Origin: Octopus bimaculoides
Lineage: Eukaryota
Reading direction: 5' to 3'
DNA length: 63,603 nt
Assembly (NCBI RefSeq): GCF_001194135.2
Contig: NC_068993.1
Coordinates: 45,709,648-45,773,250 of the forward strand
The position numbers and the translations under genes were made by a program. The first letter of the stretch is position 1. Every line of letters begins with the position of its first letter. Shown one piece after another: positions 63,289 through 63,562 of this stretch. A model generated the notes under the pieces. The model ran no database searches. It saw nothing but the letters and a program-made list of their open reading frames with translations, and was not told the origin of the DNA.

Positions 63289-63562
63289 ATGGCAGTCCCA
63301 AAATTAGGACGAAAGCTGCCGTGAATTAGCTCCAAGAAGCCATCGCCTCTAGCTAGCTATGTGACACACGAAACCTGTGTCCTTTATAACCTTCGAACAG
63401 GGGAGGTCAGCAGTGTCCCCCTGCTGGTTTGGCATCTGCAGACTAGACTAGTTTCAGGGTGTTGCCCCTTGTCAATGCAGAGTAGCCAAGCCTTAGCCAG
63501 GCGGCGCTGCTGACTGTCTGCTCGAAGGTTATTTATCTAATTTCAGTGGAATCTATCCACTG
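63289..63562 (+). ncRNA. Highly structured RNA-like element, possibly a LINE 5' UTR
   Basis: Four helical domains: 63289-63322; gacaca/tgtgtc at 63363-63381; a branched rod at 63386-63532 (15-, 12-, 8- and 6-bp helices); cagtgga/tccactg at 63544-63562. Four U-G pairs occur on the plus strand versus one A-C mismatch. Confidence 0.5.

Follow-up and report, generated by a model that had tools for sequence, protein, structure and literature searches.

Near the right-hand end of a 63,603-nt stretch of Octopus bimaculoides DNA (contig NC_068993.1, assembly GCF_001194135.2; hereafter the window) lies a GC-rich, strongly folding island whose left edge falls at position 63283. From sequence comparison, we consider it probable (about 0.8) that this element is a copy of an interspersed repeat or mobile element of octopus genomes, and it is best filed as an unclassified octopus interspersed-repeat copy with a built-in long inverted repeat. 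The same sequence is present at two loci in two genomes, the two copies have a common left terminus, which abuts a (TA)18 microsatellite in the window, and the second copy is truncated on the right. A narrower assignment, to the 3'-terminal part of a retroposed element that lies on the minus strand with its 3' end at 63283, is tentative in both orientation and class; we give it even odds or slightly less. The parts of the element are listed below in window coordinates, on the forward (plus) strand.

63246-63282: (TA)18 microsatellite that directly adjoins the left end of the repeat with no spacer; candidate insertion target or tail
63283-63493: segment homologous to positions 9970-10175 of the Octopus vulgaris locus L001; defines the repeat family and its left terminus
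63291-63320: hairpin 1 (GGCAG/CUGCC, inner GUCC/GGAC), 8 nt from the left terminus
63326-63359: hairpin 2 (UUAGCU.../...AGCUAGCUA), within the block most conserved between the two copies
63363-63381: hairpin 3 (GACACA/UGUGUC), seen in the MFE folds
63386-63532: long imperfect inverted repeat (the rod), with arms of ~60 nt each and a branched top of ~30 nt
63544-63562: small hairpin (CAGUGGA/UCCACUG), then TTTT at 63564-63567; outside the segment homologous to L001

A second copy in Octopus vulgaris defines a dispersed repeat

Translated ORFs of the element served as bait for relatives, in place of a direct search of eukaryotic DNA. An exhaustive HMMER search of 1.84 billion representative proteins with the +1-frame ORF returned one credible match (P0001, E 5.7e-7), the protein CAI9729092.1, annotated as 'Hypothetical predicted protein [Octopus vulgaris]'. 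This protein tracks window frame +1, then +2, then +1 again, as expected if the ORF crosses a diverged DNA copy that has acquired small indels. The locus L001, 20.5 kb of O. vulgaris chromosome OX597823.1 (GCA_951406725.2) around the CAI9729092.1 ORF, contains such a copy. Between window positions 63283-63493 and L001 9970-10175, blastn finds 84.5% identity over 207 nt (E 2e-58; nhmmer, E 5.9e-41), and 179 of the 215 columns of a global alignment are identical.

Starting at the left end, the homology covers hairpins 1-3, the 5' arm and top of the rod and ~19 nt of its 3' arm without interruption, and then stops; the core 63329-63371 is nearly identical in both copies. A search with nhmmer (query 63486-63603) did not recover the remainder of the 3' arm within 10 kb in L001. 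Thus, the L001 copy ends inside the rod, which cannot form there, and is a dead fragment. On both the left and the right, the flanks of the element do not align between the window and L001, even with 7-nt words, and the only other pieces common to the two regions are SINE-like repeats elsewhere. The loci are therefore not orthologous, and the element is a dispersed repeat. Because the homology continues through the rod, the rod belongs to the family sequence; it did not arise here by local accident or as a nested MITE. A nested MITE had been entertained on account of a TTTA/TA duplication at the flanks of the rod and was rejected, since the L001 homology crosses the junction. Searches of the window itself with blastn (word size 7) and nhmmer found no further copies of the element.

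The edges of the L001 copy carry direct repeats whose identity depends on how the first 13 nt are aligned: TTATC (or AGTTATC/AATTATC, 6 of 7) if the copy starts at 9965, and CCAA if it starts at 9970. These repeats are compatible with a target-site duplication, weakly so given that they are short, AT-rich and alignment-dependent. At the corresponding end, the L001 copy has neither a poly(A) nor a repeat tail; it adjoins AT-rich DNA and not (TA)n, whereas the window copy adjoins (TA)18. The 177-aa ORF of CAI9729092.1 (L001 10001-10534) crosses the repeat copy and continues into microsatellite and low-complexity sequence; it is probably spurious and unlikely to represent a real gene product. At least one annotated O. 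vulgaris 'hypothetical protein' would thus be an ORF through a repeat copy.

Other collections gave no relatives. A word-indexed protein search returned no match for the +1-frame ORF or for a six-frame concatenate of the element, nor for ORFs read through the SINE-like repeats of the window. Exact-pattern scans of metagenome, prokaryote genome and viral collections with probes for the rod, hairpin 1 and the conserved core gave zero matches. Plasmids and phages likewise had no blastn match, which gives no hint of contamination from vectors or bacteria. In the full text of the literature, k-mers of the element hit only unrelated primers.

The rod folds equally well on both strands

The GC content is 0.52 in 63283-63535, as against 0.35 in the whole window and 0.29 in its last 68 nt, confirming the GC-rich island that a preliminary description of this DNA had reported. 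The rod pairings given there are also present in the sequence: 63386-63400 and 63518-63532 are complementary at 14 of 15 positions, and 63406-63425 pairs with 63495-63514 as well. On the plus strand, the 147-nt rod has an MFE of -76.3 kcal/mol compared with -50.0 +/- 4.3 kcal/mol for dinucleotide shuffles (z -6.17, with 0 of 200 shuffles as good), and is thermodynamically significant. The minus strand of the rod reaches z -6.99 against the same kind of shuffles. The 288-nt stretch 63283-63570 behaves alike, with z -6.33 on the plus strand and -119.0 kcal/mol, z -6.40 for its reverse complement.

The argument that U-G pairs on the plus strand mark an RNA structure and not a DNA palindrome is not supported, since the minus strand folds equally and there is no overall strand preference. 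The wobble excess is small and, at counts this low, not significant: the MFE structures contain 5 G-U pairs on the plus strand versus 1 on the minus strand, and a direct alignment of the arms contains 3 G.U versus 1 A.C. The same alignment, with 47 matches, 5 mismatches and 14 gap columns, bears out the asymmetric bulges that had been noted. They reflect ~7 small indel events versus only 5 mismatches, several of the indels being located in slippage-prone runs of G or C. Such a balance is not the usual result of decay of a once-perfect palindrome.

In a hairpin scan of the window (2,155 segments of 150 nt), the rod did not stand out: at least three further hairpins outside microsatellites are as strong or stronger. 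As a branched structure of ~45 bp, the rod would be longer than the stem of a typical animal pri-miRNA.

The preliminary description also listed three further hairpins. These folds are present but near chance (z about -2, with 6 to 12 of 200 shuffles equal), except on the minus strand of 63533-63603. The segment 63283-63385 gives z -2.1, with 8 of 200 shuffles equal, and 63533-63603 gives z -2.1 (6 of 200), or z -3.8 (1 of 200) on the minus strand. Hairpin 1 (helices 1-2) is retained in the L001 copy, where 8 of its 11 pairs are unchanged, 1 is kept as a wobble and 2 are broken. In this region GACGAAAGC of the window corresponds to GACAAATGC in L001, so that the GAAA reads AAAU and is not conserved. 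In hairpin 2 (helices 3-4), 10 of 11 pairs are unchanged, and in hairpin 3 (helix 5) the closing G-C becomes G-U.

RNA families and selection on structure

Rfam 15 produced no match at gathering thresholds anywhere in the window. When 63200-63603 was searched at E<=10, weak matches well below gathering scores appeared, mostly to miRNA models, which lie on or run out of the left microsatellite block; none falls wholly inside the element, and none is to the hammerhead, HDV, CPEB3, drz, twister, pistol or hatchet families. No characterised family was thus matched. The hammerhead motif CUGANGA is absent from both strands of 63200-63603, and partners for an HDV-like P1/P2 pairing around the rod could not be placed by eye. 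ARAGORN found no tRNA, inspection by eye found no A-box or B-box on either strand, and the element has no relation to the two SINE-like families of the window. The earlier comparison of hairpin 1 with half a hammerhead, and the ribozyme role also suggested, are therefore not supported: CUGANGA is missing, L001 has AAAU, and no ribozyme core or matching Rfam family was found.

We next compared base pairing between the two copies. Among the 52 pairs of the window MFE structure for which both sides are present in L001, 41 are unchanged, 4 are kept as wobbles, 7 are broken and none is compensated, about the outcome expected from neutral transitions and transversions. In an improved pairwise alignment in which indels count as events, substitutions affect 15 of 133 paired and 12 of 73 unpaired positions (p 0.29). 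An apparent excess of conservation in stems over loops (p 0.006), obtained from a MAFFT column count, was discarded: it arose from a poorly aligned stretch and from a 5-nt gap counted fivefold. The claim of selection on RNA structure is thus not borne out by the compensation count or the stem-loop comparison, to which two copies, one of them dead, lend almost no power.

A minus-strand retroposed element as the favored reading

In target-primed reverse transcription, copies share the 3' end of the element and are truncated at the 5' end. Here, the left end is what the two copies have in common, and the right part is missing from L001; the left end would thus be the 3' end, and the element would lie on the minus strand. 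From this pattern we infer the orientation and retroposition; the hairpins may have a role in recognition by a reverse transcriptase.

In such a scheme, the element would be the 3'-terminal ~250 nt or more of a non-LTR or Penelope-like retrotransposon, or of a non-autonomous passenger of one, with a small terminal hairpin 8 nt from its 3' end and a long stem-loop upstream of that hairpin. The 3' end of the element RNA, often a stem-loop, would be bound by the reverse transcriptase, and a nick in AT-rich or (TA)n DNA would prime cDNA synthesis. Premature termination would then yield 5'-truncated copies such as that of O. vulgaris. The (TA)18 at the left end could reflect insertion into a (TA)n tract or be a microsatellite derived from a tail.

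The abutment on (TA)18 is unlikely to be fortuitous, because the window has 34 (TA)>=6 runs in ~57 kb, of which this is one, and the calculated chance of exact abutment is ~0.001 per position. Base rates also favor retroposition: repeats make up ~66% of the O. vulgaris genome, with retrotransposons at ~32%, DNA transposons at ~8% and unclassified repeats at 15% (PMC13282606, Table S1). The window is, moreover, rich in SINE-like repeats that also occur in L001, which counts for a mobile element in general.

Other observations weigh against the minus-strand assignment. The truncation pattern comes from a single extra copy, and a later deletion would look identical. The L001 copy lacks a tail, and its candidate target-site duplications are short, AT-rich and alignment-dependent. 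The wobble pairs of the rod favor the plus strand (5 G-U vs 1), the opposite of what selection on a minus-strand RNA would leave, and the absence of compensatory change (0 of 52 pairs) backs no RNA structure at all. No reverse-transcriptase remnant was recognized by eye in the six-frame translation of 58650-63603 and no reverse-transcriptase or endonuclease ORF was seen, with the window ending ~68 nt past the rod. The mobile-element connection made in the preliminary description is thus upheld, in general terms, by a homologous O. vulgaris copy with unrelated flanks, but its specific claims of a LINE leader, a ribozyme and RNA selection are not.

Alternative explanations

The rod suggests an alternative at the DNA level, in which the element would represent a DNA transposon, by its end or a fragment, or else a foldback/MITE-type element, and its inverted repeat would act as DNA. 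The arms would then be transposase-binding or subterminal repeats, and the RNA hairpin a by-product of read-through transcription. Equal folding of the two strands is as expected for a DNA inverted repeat, similar long inverted repeats are common in the window, TIR elements account for ~6.8% of the O. vulgaris genome (PMC13282606), and a 4-nt TTTA (or TA) stands on both sides of the rod. However, the rod is internal: homology to L001 extends 100 nt leftward of it, which makes its apparent target-site duplication probably a chance occurrence in AT-rich DNA. Terminal inverted repeats of the kind that define MITEs are not seen either, as the inverted repeat is internal to the family and the left terminus has no inverted counterpart in the 320 nt available or within 10 kb in L001. 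A solo left end would need an additional deletion step, and ~7 indel events against 5 mismatches are atypical of a decayed perfect TIR. On balance we regard a DNA transposon as unlikely, and its account of the arms and the hairpin as equally so. The simpler idea of a palindrome formed by chance or by local inverted duplication, with neither family nor function, can be practically dismissed even in a genome rich in inverted repeats: 0 of 200 shuffles fold as well, and both arms (the 3' arm in part) occur in the independent O. vulgaris copy, a homology that already refutes it.

Other readings place a functional RNA on this DNA. The preliminary description first suggested a LINE 5' UTR on the plus strand; more broadly, a LINE or Penelope-like element whose ORF lies beyond 63603 would have the element as its structured 5' leader, serving as a promoter, IRES or processing signal. 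Consistent with a leader are the sharp family boundary beside (TA)18, the preference of Naiad elements in Octopus spp. for (TA)n, where insertion would leave repeats at both ends (PMC8557442), and wobble pairs that slightly favor the plus strand. But retroelement copies are normally 5'-truncated, whereas in L001 the first 206 nt are retained and all sequence to their right is gone; a plus-strand leader would require that the body of that copy had been deleted. No open frame is present in the last 68 nt of the window (GC 0.29), and HDV-like or hammerhead matches are missing; a leader is thus improbable. At similarly long odds, the element could be an undescribed structured small RNA of ~280 nt, perhaps a product of RNA polymerase III running from ~63283 to the TTTT at 63564-63567. 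TA-rich DNA would precede its start, and the O. vulgaris copy would on that reading be a 3'-truncated retropseudogene. Some snRNAs do give rise to 3'-truncated retropseudogenes flanked by direct repeats, and the sharp 5' boundary common to both copies, the T4 run after the terminal hairpin and the near-identity of the core would suit a small RNA. Against it stand the lack of an Rfam match even at E<=10, of an A or B box and of a tRNA-like head, the oddity of a microsatellite as promoter, the absence of compensatory change and stems that are not significantly better conserved than loops. We think it no less of a long shot that the rod and hairpins form an octopod-specific functional RNA module, either a ~280-nt small RNA that spawns retropseudogenes or a novel long 3' structure that the reverse transcriptase of a cephalopod retroelement would need for recognition; were it true, the sharp common terminus and the near-identical core 63329-63371 would reflect selection in an active lineage. 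A self-cleaving hammerhead or HDV-like ribozyme embedded in a retroelement is barely credible: the sole pointer to it is the local GUCC...GGAC-GAAA resemblance, and the motif, family and pairing searches described above, together with the loss of GAAA in L001, all oppose it.

Comparison with known elements

As a minus-strand retroposed element, the repeat most resembles the 'stringent' non-LTR retrotransposons (L2, CR1, RTE) and their partner SINEs. It would be like them in having a hairpin near the 3' end, given the orientation proposed here, and in its common 3' end, 5' truncation and short candidate target duplications, as judged from one truncated copy. Molluscan SINEs and CR1/L2 LINEs share conserved 3' stem-loops (PMC4824008), and LINEs, RTE and CR1 among them, account for ~13% of the O. 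vulgaris genome (PMC13282606). In contrast to these systems, neither a partner LINE nor an ORF was seen, and the two copies have no repeat tail in common. The main structure here, the 147-nt rod ~100 nt from the end, is also much larger than the usual recognition hairpin of 10-20 bp.

Penelope-like elements, which constitute ~6.8% of the O. vulgaris genome (PMC13282606), offer a lead only. Those of the Naiad type occur in Octopus spp., prefer (TA)n, are heavily 5'-truncated and lack canonical hammerheads, and inverted arrangements have been shown for Naiad and Neptune elements (Craig et al. 2021, PMC8557442). The window copy adjoins (TA)18; the L001 copy lies outside (TA)n. Penelope-like elements are further marked by an ORF for a reverse transcriptase plus GIY-YIG endonuclease, by pseudo-LTRs from partial tandem insertion and by a 30-40-bp 'tail'; the sequence covered here contains no such ORF and no tandem partner. 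MITEs and foldback elements are similar in their long imperfect inverted repeats and strand-symmetric folding, in a genome that holds many such hairpins, but here the inverted repeat is internal to a larger unit, GC-rich, and no second copy of similar size was found. Retrozymes, Penelope pLTR ribozymes and HDV-like LINE ribozymes are also highly paired, retroelement-associated units of ~200-400 nt; they differ from the element, which has no catalytic core, no Rfam match and no tandem arrangement.

As it stands, the element is one more structured repeat piece in a genome that is about two-thirds repeats, and by itself it matters little. It does illustrate that a repeat copy can underlie a GC-rich island with strong folding in the intergenic DNA of an octopus. 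If compensatory changes among subfamilies were to maintain the rod, it would become a useful case for the study of retroelement RNA structure and of what the highly active RNA-editing and small-RNA machinery of cephalopods may act on.

Other features of the window

The window contains 18 runs of N (6,874 N in total). Several of these assembly gaps are bordered by simple repeats, e.g. 5602-6471, 16776-16928 and 62648-62835, and long (AAT)n tracts also occur, e.g. around 50185-50435. Pfam searches of ten window ORFs detected only a decayed C2H2 zinc-finger fragment, far from the element, at 10358-10570 on the minus strand (zf-C2H2, E 1.6e-4, below threshold) in a microsatellite-ridden ORF.

Three other inverted repeats were recorded. 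The arms of a 220-nt inverted repeat lie at 2724-2943 and 3026-3245; they are 94% complementary, stand 82 nt apart and together make up a foldback or MITE-like element of ~570 bp. A near-perfect 120-nt hairpin at 19901-20020 (MFE -67.9 kcal/mol, z -9.5) adjoins the assembly gap 18892-19868. A perfect 35-bp palindrome with a 4-nt loop at 2552-2625 (ATGGCCGGAGTCAAATGACAAACAAGTAAAAG..., z -11.6) directly follows a SINE-like repeat copy. A related piece of ~40 nt lies beside the same SINE-like repeat at L001 11322-11364, and the palindrome may be part of the tail of that family.

SINE-like family 1 (~220 nt) occurs at 18241-18889 as three head-to-tail units, with copies 68-77% identical; further copies are located at 35370-35828, 41756-41979, 28450-28843, 32058-32198 and 48012-48156. 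SINE-like family 2 (~160 nt) is represented at 8111-8273, 9503-9637, 56305-56463 and 2439-2526 of the window and at L001 10982-11143, the window copy at 8111-8273 being 87.7% identical to that of O. vulgaris.
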